Shown here one piece after another: positions 5,366-8,910 of a stretch of 8,910 bases of DNA. The notes below the pieces were generated by a model. That model had not been told where the DNA came from and searched no databases. It worked only from the letters and a program-made list of their open reading frames with translations. Source of the DNA: Amoeboradix gromovi X-113 (Eukaryota > Fungi > Sanchytriomycota); NCBI GenBank assembly GCA_018985225.1, contig JADGIF010000419.1:1-8910 (forward strand), written 5' to 3'. Position 1 is the first letter of the stretch; each line of letters opens with the position of its first letter. The translations under genes were made by a program, and so were the position numbers.

Positions 5366-5471
5366 ATAATATACATGTAAGATTAACGTTGTCTTCCACA
5401 CTATTTTGCTACATTTCTGTGGCAAGTTGCGCCAGGTTTATTTCTTTTCGTTTCTATTTTTTGCTACAAGA

Positions 5472-6371
5472 ATGTTCGCCATACCTTTCCATGATGAGAT
5501 GTTAAGTAAAATCAAGGAATGTCCAACAAGATCTGTGTTGGTGTTAAAAGACCCAAGTTTGGTTAGCTTTTACGATGACTTATCCAATTGCAAAATAATA
5601 CTGCCGACGCTAGATAACTTGGAAATATCCGAAGACTTGCTAAAAGATTTTGACTATATAGTAATAGAAGACGCAGAAGAAGTCATTGGTCATCCTATAT
5701 TATATACTGTGTTAGATCAGATACAATACACAAAATGTAAAATTATAATTTCTACTTGTAAAACTGATATATTGGATTCATTTGAAAAGAGAATAAAAAG
5801 TAGGTTTAACAATTCAGTCATTAATCTCTTTGAGCTATATTCCAAAAAAACTGGGTCTGAATTAGTTTATGAGATGCTAATTAGCGTCAAATCTAACAAG
5901 GCTGTTTTGTTAAGATTGCAGGAAGTGAGTGCTGTTATAGATGAGAATTGGAGAATGTGCCAGTGCTATGGTATATTAAATCCAATAGCAAGCCTAATTT
6001 ATGATGGCTTGCCCATTTCAAACTTGCTCCCAAATCGACAAGATGTGGAACAACTTCATGATATGGACAAAGACATATTAAAGACATGTATATTGCAGAA
6101 CAGAATACACCCGTATATTACTAGTGCACTAATTATCAAGTTTTTAAAGAAACAATACCAATTTAGTGTTTTGGTGCTACAACAGCGAATGGACGTATTA
6201 TGTGAGCTAGGATTCCTGTTACCATGTGAATTAAACTGGGAAACATCCATGCTTCCAAGAGAATATCATCCATTCCAGTGTATTGCCAGCATTTATGATT
6301 TGGAATGTTTAAAACCGAAGAAAATTGAGTTGGCTTCTGAAATTCAAATGTATATGACAAGAGAAGAATAA
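5472..6371 (+). CDS. ORC4: Origin recognition complex subunit 4, reduced and divergent (299 aa)
   Basis: LYTVLDQIQ...STCKTDILDSFEKRIKSRF..SVINL matches the Orc4 block LYNLFD...TCRLDILELLEKRVKSRF. Walker B-like YIVIEDAE. C-terminal winged-helix-like segment (DVLCELGFLLP...REY). First ATG is 5472; the track's 5406 start is a TTG. Confidence 0.85.
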   Translation: MFAIPFHDEMLSKIKECPTRSVLVLKDPSLVSFYDDLSNCKIILPTLDNLEISEDLLKDFDYIVIEDAEEVIGHPILYTVLDQIQYTKCKIIISTCKTDILDSFEKRIKSRFNNSVINLFELYSKKTGSELVYEMLISVKSNKAVLLRLQEVSAVIDENWRMCQCYGILNPIASLIYDGLPISNLLPNRQDVEQLHDMDKDILKTCILQNRIHPYITSALIIKFLKKQYQFSVLVLQQRMDVLCELGFLLPCELNWETSMLPREYHPFQCIASIYDLECLKPKKIELASEIQMYMTREE

Positions 6372-6403
6372 ACCGTATAGATAACAGTTTTTATTTAAAT
6401 CTT

Positions 6404-6764
6404 TTACATTTCCTGCATGTTTAAATGCGCAGTCGGTTTAGGCAATTCTATGTTCTCACTTGTACACTTCTCAAGAACAAATTTGCTTCTATCTAAAGGA
6501 CAGCTATAATTAGACGACTGCTGCTGAAGCCATTGGGATATACAATGGAAATGAAAGACGTGTTTACATTTACCAAAAGCAATAGGACAATTTTCTGGAT
6601 TATCGCAGTTTGGGCAGCCGTATTGAAAAGTTTGTCTACATATTCCACAATGCTCCTGATCAGAGTCATATTTCCAACTAGCTACTGCAGATATCGATTT
6701 TATTTTTACTTTGAAAGGATTAATTTTTGAGGAAAACGTCGTTGTTTTAAAAATTGAAATTCAT
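6404..6764 (-). CDS. APC11: APC11/Rbx1-family RING-H2 protein, most like anaphase-promoting complex subunit 11; start site unresolved (absent from the ORF track)
   Basis: Hand translation of the - strand frame 6760..6404: ISIFKTTTFSSKINPFKVKIKSISAVASWKYDSDQEHCGICRQTFQYGCPNCDNPENCPIAFGKCKHVFHFHCISQWLQQQSSNYSCPLDRSKFVLEKCTSENIELPKPTAHLNMQEM*. Matches the Apc11 pattern KVKIK...VA.W...CGICR..F...CP.C...CP...G.C.H.FH.HCI..WL...CP..R. An in-frame TGA lies at 6763-6761; the nearest ATG (6764-6762) is one base out of frame. Confidence 0.9.
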
Positions 6765-7564
6765 ATTATGTTCTCATCAAAAGTCCTAATTTAACACGAA
6801 ATTAAAAGTTTCCACAAAAACTGAAAATCCAGTCGCTCGGTTATAGTCGCTGCACACTGCCATTACCCTTAATCGTAATTGAATAAGGATCACATGCTTC
6901 AAGTAAATGTTCTTTGCAGCCACACGATCTCTATGTACTGTTGATGACAACTTTCAATGTTTTCAATAGTCCCGGTGCCTGTGAACTACTTAAAGAAAAC
7001 ATTAACTTGTCGTTCAAGATCTGCCTTTTTTTACTAGACGAGATACTCGCATATAAGACAACATGTCTTAAAAAAGATGTGAAGGTATCAAACGACTCTT
7101 GAGGCTCTTGCTACGGTACAGGAATCTCTTTTCTAGTCTTGAAAAGTCTCGTATTATGCCATCTTTGAACTAGTTTTCTGTGTCTAATATTGACTTCTTA
7201 GATCTCTCTTATTTAGCTTGAGACAACTTCGAACCATTTGCAATTGATATTGAAAGAATATTGGGTTTTTTCGGTCAGAAAAGTGTAGAAAGAGTTTTTT
7301 TATAGCGGCATAGCTCATTTATACAGAATAAATAATTTACTCGATTAAAACTTCAACTTGCCGAATGTGCTAAGTCAAGGCTCTGATTATTACCAGCAAA
7401 CAGAATATACTTATTTGTTTCATACACAATTTTCGCTAGTTATGTCTGCCATCCCAAATTCCAAAAAACTGATTTTGTAATTTTAAAGACTCAGTGACAG
7501 GAATCGAGGCGTAGGTTTAAGCATAATTTCATCTGCAGTTGCAATACTCGTTTATTTTTCAAAC

Positions 7565-8668
7565 ATGTCCCAACTTCAGAGCGCTTTAACTTCCAAAGAT
7601 TCTTCCATCCATTATCAATATGAAAAGTACAGCAGAAACAATCTCTTAAAAGATGAAAACTACGCCATTATTCAGCATATTATAGATAATTCATCAGATA
7701 TTAAAAGTGATATGACCTTAATTGCAAACAAGCATGGTTTGTTAAAAGCCAACATTTCTAAAATTGTGCAGCACATTTTAGATACCAAGAACCCATCAAA
7801 ACAGCTGTTGCTTGACCTTTATGAAATTACTACAAATAAAATTTATTTAGAAGGTCAATATGCCAAGATTGTTTTGGCACTTAGTAAATATGACCCTACA
7901 AAGCTACTAGATGTAAACATTGATACCATTCAACTCGATAGATATGAAAAGCTATGTTTTATTCTGCAGCAATTGGAATGTTTGTTGGCTGTGCAGCAAC
8001 ACAATAAAGTGGAATTACTAGCAAAGAAAGTGAATATGAACGTACTCAAAGATCATCCTGCTGAAAATAAAAGTTATTATCGTTTAATGGCCAATTACTA
8101 TTTGGCTGTTAAAGATTACTCCAAATTAGGTCTAGCTTATTCTACCTTGTACAAAATAGACAAGGACCAATCTAACTTGACTAATTGCTTTTACACATTT
8201 CTTGCGCAATACTCAATGGAGCAAGTTCTTCAGTTACGTCAGCTAATTGAATGGGATCATCCTTTTAAATCTTTTTTAAAACAGGTTTGTCAAAATGAGC
8301 TAATTACAGAAGGAGTCAAGTTTGAACACCCTTTGCTCCAAACCAGAATCAATGAACACGTAGCTTGCTTATTAACGTAGAATGTTAGAGTTATGAGTTT
8401 GTACTATTATAGAATTCATTTATCACATATGGCGTCATTGTTGAAAATGCCAATTGATCAGTTGGAGCAGATATTGTGTGAGTTGGTAACTAATAAAACA
8501 ATCGAGTGTAAGATTGACAGATTGACTATGGTTGTTAGATTTGAGAAACCAGAACACACAATTGGTGCATGGACTGAAAACGTTGATAAAATGTTGCAGT
8601 GCATTGATCAGGTATCACATTTGATGACAACAGAAGAGATGTTCCATAAGATTCACAATGTGGAATAA
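7565..8668 (+). CDS. RPN5: 26S proteasome lid subunit Rpn5/PSMD12 (PCI domain); exons 7565-8359 and 8381-8668; 360 aa spliced
   Basis: Motifs KIYLE..YAKI, EKLCFILQQ, RINEH|NVRVMSLYYYRI (consensus RVIEHNIRVISKYY.RI), KIDR...VRFEKP, W..NVDKML..I..VSHLM..EEM.H. The track ORFs 7565..8380 and 8393..8668 are in the same frame. Confidence 0.95.
8360..8380 (+). other. 21-nt phase-0 spliceosomal intron in RPN5
   Basis: gtagcttgcttattaacgtag: GT...TAG ends and a branch-point-like TTAAC at 8372-8376. Removal deletes the in-frame TAG and restores the conserved EH-N motif exactly. Confidence 0.9.
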
Positions 8669-8910
8669 ATAAAAACATGACTCTACTAACAGTTAAAGAT
8701 CGTATTCATTTCTATAAAAACATTCTTTTGCCTTATCCAGTTGTCTTTTCCTTCATTTACCGCTAATAACCTCAAACAAACGGGACATGCTCTGTAAAAA
8801 CTAGACTAGACAATTTGTATCGAAATTTCAAAAATAAACAGTCTGTATAGCTATTCTTTTGCCCTTTCATCCAGTCTTTATTTTAGAATTGCAGGATAAC
8901 TATTGACTTT

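Follow-up and report, generated by a model that had tools for sequence, protein, structure and literature searches.

APC11 of the sanchytrid fungus Amoeboradix gromovi lacks an in-frame AUG start and possibly begins at a near-cognate codon

Yeast GRS1 and ALA1 are non-AUG-initiated genes or isoforms, with UUG and ACG as their respective start codons, and 'shifty stop' sites of +1 frameshifting occur in bacterial prfB (CUU-UGA-C), in antizyme (UCC-UGA-U and GCG-UGA-C), and in Euplotes (AAA-UAA). Conserved AUU, ACG, and CUG starts have been documented in fungi, and in vivo reporters of Neurospora cpc-1 placed near-cognate starts below 1% of the AUG level (PMC5487733). A further known class is the low-level compensatory frameshifting by which indels are rescued (PMC5009743).

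The window analyzed here, by which we mean the whole stretch of 8,910 nt, is an entire contig (C680) of a genome that we searched over 10.5 Mb and 1319 contigs, and it carries on its - strand the RING-H2 frame of APC11. Amoeboradix gromovi is an alga-parasitising sanchytrid fungus, and APC11 is an essential cell-division gene that encodes subunit 11 of the anaphase-promoting complex (APC/C). Like cpc-1, GRS1, and ALA1, the window has in-frame AUU and ACG codons with A at -3 and no stop before the domain, and, as in those genes, low-level initiation with Met-tRNAi would be expected. In those cases, however, the non-AUG codon is conserved and lengthens a protein for which an AUG start exists as well, whereas in the window an essential gene would have no start other than a non-AUG codon, and its relatives use AUG. 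Non-AUG initiation is a known kind of decoding, as is shifty-stop frameshifting; APC11 would be an unusual new case in that an essential gene would rely on a non-AUG codon alone for its start. We found no literature joining APC11 with non-AUG initiation.

The window also shares with prfB, antizyme, and Euplotes a slippery P-site codon that can re-pair in +1 and that precedes a stop in frame 0. The known sites lie well within coding sequence and are conserved, regulatory or, in Euplotes, spread over the whole genome, whereas the site in the window lies five codons from an AUG, is present in one species, and has a UAA-A context, and no second case was found in 200 kb of the genome. As in compensatory ('corrective') frameshifting, a homopolymer lies beside the defect and little product may suffice (PMC5009743), but this would require that translation had started at the ATG at 6764 before the run gained a T, and to this the relatives lend no support.

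An intact APC11 frame without an in-frame AUG

The RING-H2 frame (6404-6760, - strand) has 118 open codons between an upstream TGA (6763-6761), which overlaps the ATG at 6764, and the terminal TAA (6406-6404), and its conserved body starts with KVKIK at 6712. In-frame ATGs are found only as the fourth-last and the last sense codons, and none precedes the RING domain. Reading out the - strand thereby bore out two claims of the preliminary description of this DNA, namely that the frame is closed upstream by that TGA and that no AUG is available ahead of the domain. In 20,000 shuffles, the chance rate for an open frame of the same length and composition was 0.00025.

The open frame matched the Pfam model zf-ANAPC11 (PF12861) at 8.9e-23 and 80.6 bits (cut-off 25), and its top match among solved structures was human ANAPC11 (2.5e-19), over residues 2-80. 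In this match, the KVKIK of the window (from K 6712) aligns with human residues 2-6. We recognized APC11 by a zf-ANAPC11-type RING-H2 domain and an N-terminal KVKIK strand directly ahead of it, and both are present. The protein has the complete domain and the strand of the APC11/RBX1 RING-H2 subunits of cullin-type ubiquitin ligases and is no different from known APC11; the start codon alone is missing. The runner-up in the genome was a 90-aa RBX1-like ORF on contig C692, which has a normal ATG and 42% identity, and the window gene is distinct from this RBX1 paralogue. The window therefore carries the real, single-copy APC11 of A. gromovi, intact as had been proposed and with no intact second copy elsewhere. 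A word search of protein sequences returned no protein identical to it.

Starts of the relatives and near-cognate codons in the window

We found two relatives of this protein: P0001, a EukProt protein that is 80% identical and came from a word search, and P0002, 70% identical, from the ENA metagenome contigs L004 and L005. In the JGI metagenomes, the closest APC11 relative was 40% identical. From its level of identity and its source, we infer that P0001 belongs to a sister species. P0001 begins MGL-KVKIK, P0002 begins MKQGL-SIKTK, encoded in L004 from an ordinary ATG, and the window reads K-I-N-P-F-KVKIK in the same register. The Met codons of the relatives lie three and five codons ahead of the motif, and an ATT in the window (6724-6722) falls between them. 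As both relatives have a Met start beside KVKIK, the state without AUG is lineage-specific and not a conserved recoding site. Neither a near-cognate start nor the shift site is conserved in them, and the conservation of ATG...TTT-TAA or of ACG for which the preliminary description had looked to orthologues gives way to ordinary Met starts. APC11 appears to be under purifying selection, judging from the coding sequences of the window and L004: 29 of 67 identical residues are encoded by different codons, dN is 0.20-0.25, and dS is saturated.

Among the candidate starts, the ATT (6722-6724, - strand) is placed best: in frame and four codons ahead of KVKIK, it stands at the Met position of the relatives and is one base off ATG, and its context is TCAAAA-ATT-A, with A at -3 and +4. 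A start there would give a protein of 106 aa, and the proteins of the relatives have 106 and 105 aa. Two adjacent in-frame ACG codons (6742-6740 and 6739-6737, - strand), both with A at -3, are alternative near-cognate starts and would yield 112 and 111 aa, respectively. From all three codons the frame is open to the domain, which no in-frame AUG precedes. Other ATGs in the vicinity also lie in A-rich contexts, such as CAAACATG and CAAAAATG. Initiation at ACG 6742 had been named earlier as an alternative to frameshifting; the non-AUG alternative does fit better than the frameshift, but ACG 6742 is not the sole candidate, and the ATT is better placed.

We tentatively propose, with somewhat less than even confidence, that the ATG start codon mutated to ATT and that translation begins at this AUU or at the ACG pair. 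In this lineage, the start codon would have been lost by a point change, and low-level initiation would most likely use one of the near-cognate codons of the RING frame, AUU 6724 or ACG 6742/6739, where the initiator tRNA would insert Met. The ATG at 6764, just beyond the end of a transposon relic, would then open only a short upstream ORF of the leader. The argument for the ATT is one of position and context only, and near-cognate codons are frequent in AT-rich DNA. If transcription started upstream of 6764, the ATG there, which has A at -3, would take most scanning ribosomes, and frameshifting or reinitiation would be favored; a transcription start downstream of 6764 would leave non-AUG initiation as the sole remaining route. 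Either non-canonical route would yield roughly 1% of the normal output.

Should the allele be genuine and functional, this essential gene, present in a single copy, would depend on a start or a recoding event whose usual output is about 1% of that of AUG, and it would show how little APC11 suffices and how the loss of a start codon can be tolerated. Because the published protein set comprises ORFs that begin with ATG (PMC8371127), APC11 cannot be in it, and studies of presence and absence would score APC11 as lost.

Two further candidates in the leader were rejected. An upstream ORF or leader conserved with L004, suggested by the resemblance of ATGAATTTCAAT to ATGATTTTCATT and of CTCAAAAATT to CTCTAAAATG, aligned no better than shuffles did (p 0.5-0.7). 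A small duplication, suggested by the likeness of ATGAATTTCAA (6764-6754) to ATTAATCCTTTCAA (6724-6711), was left as chance, as a tandem duplication fails to explain the frames.

The sequenced allele and other frames without ATG

The sequence might not be the working allele of the species but a private mutation of a single sporangium or an early amplification error, through either a G to T change at position 6722 or one T too many in the run, while the population has an ordinary AUG start. We regard this as unlikely, though as the least improbable of the rival explanations. The source data are Illumina 2x100 reads at 123.9x coverage from multiple displacement amplification (MDA) of one sporangium that held many zoospores, and the entire assembly thus stems from a single amplified sporangium (PMC8371127). 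A single base change would explain everything, and the case was chosen for its oddness among thousands of genes. On the other hand, many genomes are present in a sporangium, so that an amplification error should not reach the consensus, and the sporangium grew while carrying this allele. If the allele does turn out to be an artefact of a single sporangium, the case is a warning for single-cell genomes.

A second assembly bears on the same point. A Logan contig of 7651 nt (run X1, depth 27.1) covers positions 5400-8809 with 0 differing letters and 0 gaps, and there are no variant contigs over the APC11 gene among the Logan contigs of X1. X1, the only run with this stretch, is probably the source run, so that the contig is the work of another assembler on those reads and not an independent sample. 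An identical contig at depth 27 makes an assembly error or a homopolymer slip in the five-T run unlikely. The surplus T from sequencing error considered in the preliminary description is therefore weakened, as all five T are kept, with the single amplified sporangium behind the data throughout. At the end of the contig, positions 8700-8910 form a high-copy repeat, in which the Logan word depth rises from 27 to >10,000 and many contigs stop.

No other broken host gene was met, which counts against such an artefact. We surveyed 200 kb on eight contigs, with ~109 long ATG-initiated ORFs, for stop-to-stop frames of >=90 codons that had no usable ATG and were not shadowed by a longer ORF. Three such frames proved to be exons that follow introns of 19-20 nt, another belonged to a Fanzor relic, and the rest looked noise-like. 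APC11 and one doubtful candidate remained, the latter being a 140-codon frame without ATG (C986:11214-11636, -) that is preceded in the same frame by an ATG, five codons, and a TAG. This second frame had no Pfam match and is not known as a gene. With a single doubtful candidate in 200 kb, genes without ATG are rare in this genome.

The upstream reading frame and the remaining alternatives

On the - strand, ATG (6764-6762), AAT, TTC, AAT, TTT, and TAA (6749-6747) form a five-codon upstream ORF, MNFNF-stop (6747-6764), which is out of frame with APC11. The TTT lies within a five-T run (6749-6753; five A on the + strand), and a +1 slip from TTT 6752-6750 to TTT 6751-6749 joins the MNFNF and RING frames, exactly as had been described. 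In a programmed or compensatory +1 frameshift, translation would start at AUG 6764 and pause after MNFNF while UAA occupies the A site; peptidyl-tRNA-Phe would then slip from UUU 6752-6750 to UUU 6751-6749, with AAA read next and a putative product of 119 aa. An essential ligase subunit would then be made through non-canonical decoding only, by an obligatory frameshift at UUU-UAA-A five codons past the AUG, and this would be a new, species-specific recoding event, soon after a transposon remodelled the 5' flank, in a fungus with standard termination. We consider this improbable. The site itself suits a shifty stop well: AAU-UUU-UAA-A, with its five-U run, allows perfect re-pairing of the P-site codon in +1 and is followed directly by the 0-frame stop, an A occupies position -3 of the ATG at 6764, and no stop interrupts the joined frame. 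The relatives, however, have plain Met starts, and the L004 leader carries in-frame stops.

The surroundings of the site add little in its favor. Known sites have UGA-C or UGA-U, whereas the stop here is UAA-A, a context in which yeast terminates strongly. We found no stable RNA fold at 6790-6670 (z = +1.2). Neither a weak termination context nor a downstream structure is present to stimulate a shift. We know of no shift site only five codons past a start codon. The preliminary description had also proposed to look for other conserved genes broken at TTT-TAA; no second case was found in the 200 kb surveyed, and TAPT1, which was suspected of being a parallel frameshift in this genome, was rejected as it has an in-frame ATG. 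The frameshift at UUU-UAA-A thus kept its fit to a shifty stop and gained nothing from conservation, flank, or structure.

The flank in question includes the right-end segment of a decayed element of the Fanzor/TnpB type (~6770-6937, - strand), which lies in the same orientation as APC11 and ends ..GGACTTTTGATGAGAAC. The segment at 6773-6937 has at least 40 copies in the genome, at 70-73% identity, and its right end near 6770 is set by 13 other copies with unrelated flanks beyond (an alignment of nine, and a motif scan with inspection of the flanks). A relic ORF (6786-6950, - strand), the end of the transposon nuclease gene, contains the motif HRDRVAAKNI, which we take to resemble the RuvC-III motif of TnpB/Fanzor. 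The ATG at 6764 is host flank DNA, 5 nt past the right end of the relic, which counts against the frameshift. A second mini upstream ORF, ATG AGA ACA TAA (6766-6777, - strand), straddles the end of the relic, and the leader contains a 32-nt stretch (6750-6719) that occurs nowhere else in the genome.

Two ways of tying the element to the start of APC11 were tried and discarded. Next to ten other copies, the ATGs that lie no more than 50 nt from the element end open just 5-37 codons, so proximity to the element is no sign of a true start, and the transposon end was rejected as a marker of one. That ATG 6764 lies within the transposon, or that the transposon lies inside the coding sequence, was rejected on account of the 13 copies that share the endpoint and have unrelated flanks. 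The spacer of ~800 nt between APC11 and RPN5 (6770-7564) holds, on the - strand, a decayed relic of the Fanzor/TnpB type, of which only the last ~170 nt match other copies, and no protein-level trace of the transposon gene was found in 6938-7564.

It is very unlikely that APC11 is a very young pseudogene or dispensable in a reduced parasite. The absence of an AUG would suit such decay, and so would the rearranged 5' flank with its transposon relic: on the 3' side, synteny with L004 extends to the gene next to APC11 (58% identity), whereas the 5' neighbour is RPN5 in the window (7565-8668) and an unrelated 485-aa gene in L004 (1414-2871), which indicates that the 5' flank was remodelled in one lineage. 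The Pfam models APC2 (PF08672), APC10, and APC8 had no match in the genome, a result for which the controls were uninformative and no positive control was valid. Three full-length cullins were found, and the unfound APC/C subunits may be too divergent for detection, or reduced. Against decay, all 118 codons are open at the low chance rate given above, all residues shared by the two relatives are retained in the window too, and the sole APC11 copy is accompanied by a CDC27-like TPR protein and by two CDC20/Fizzy co-activators (on contigs C411, 218 bits, and C385).

Last, an unrecognized RNA-level step, be it non-canonical splicing, trans-splicing, or editing, is highly improbable as the source of an AUG: the genome does have unusual splicing, with introns of 19-22 nt, and the length for removal, 3n+1, is compatible with 19 or 22 nt, but its mini-introns are all GTA..TAG, no such pair brackets the stop, no solution lies in the 19-22-nt range, and the only acceptor (6710-6709) would cost KV. 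These statements come from an enumeration in which each upstream ATG was joined to the RING frame via GT/GC..AG or AT..AC introns, as a check of frame only. No intron of 19-22 nt that supplies an ATG to APC11 appeared, and between any ATG and KVKIK there was no frame-restoring mini-intron of the form GTA...T(A/G)A(T/C)..TAG. The solutions were otherwise three AT..AC oddities of 26-32 nt and introns of 85-814 nt, and all of the GT/GC..AG type used the acceptor at 6710-6709, the sole AG acceptor ahead of the body, which deletes the conserved KV. A splice rescue of APC11 was rejected on these grounds, and the earlier statement that no splice solution gives an ATG while keeping KVKIK holds for the full set of ATGs and introns.

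True mini-introns of this kind were seen at several other places. In RPN5 (+ strand), the ORFs 7565-8380 and 8393-8668 are separated by a 21-nt mini-intron, GTA..TTAAC..TAG (8360-8380), whose excision joins ..INEH to NVRVM.., a junction that presumably fits the RPN5 family. Three more, of 19-20 nt and of the form GTA..TAG (C722:20937-20955, +; C722:15004-15022, -; C397:14212-14231, -), each link a long ORF to a downstream exon without ATG. The CDC20/Fizzy-type WD40 gene on C385 is likewise in two pieces (1712-2263 and 2277-2639, +), and the 13-nt gap between them is probably another mini-intron.
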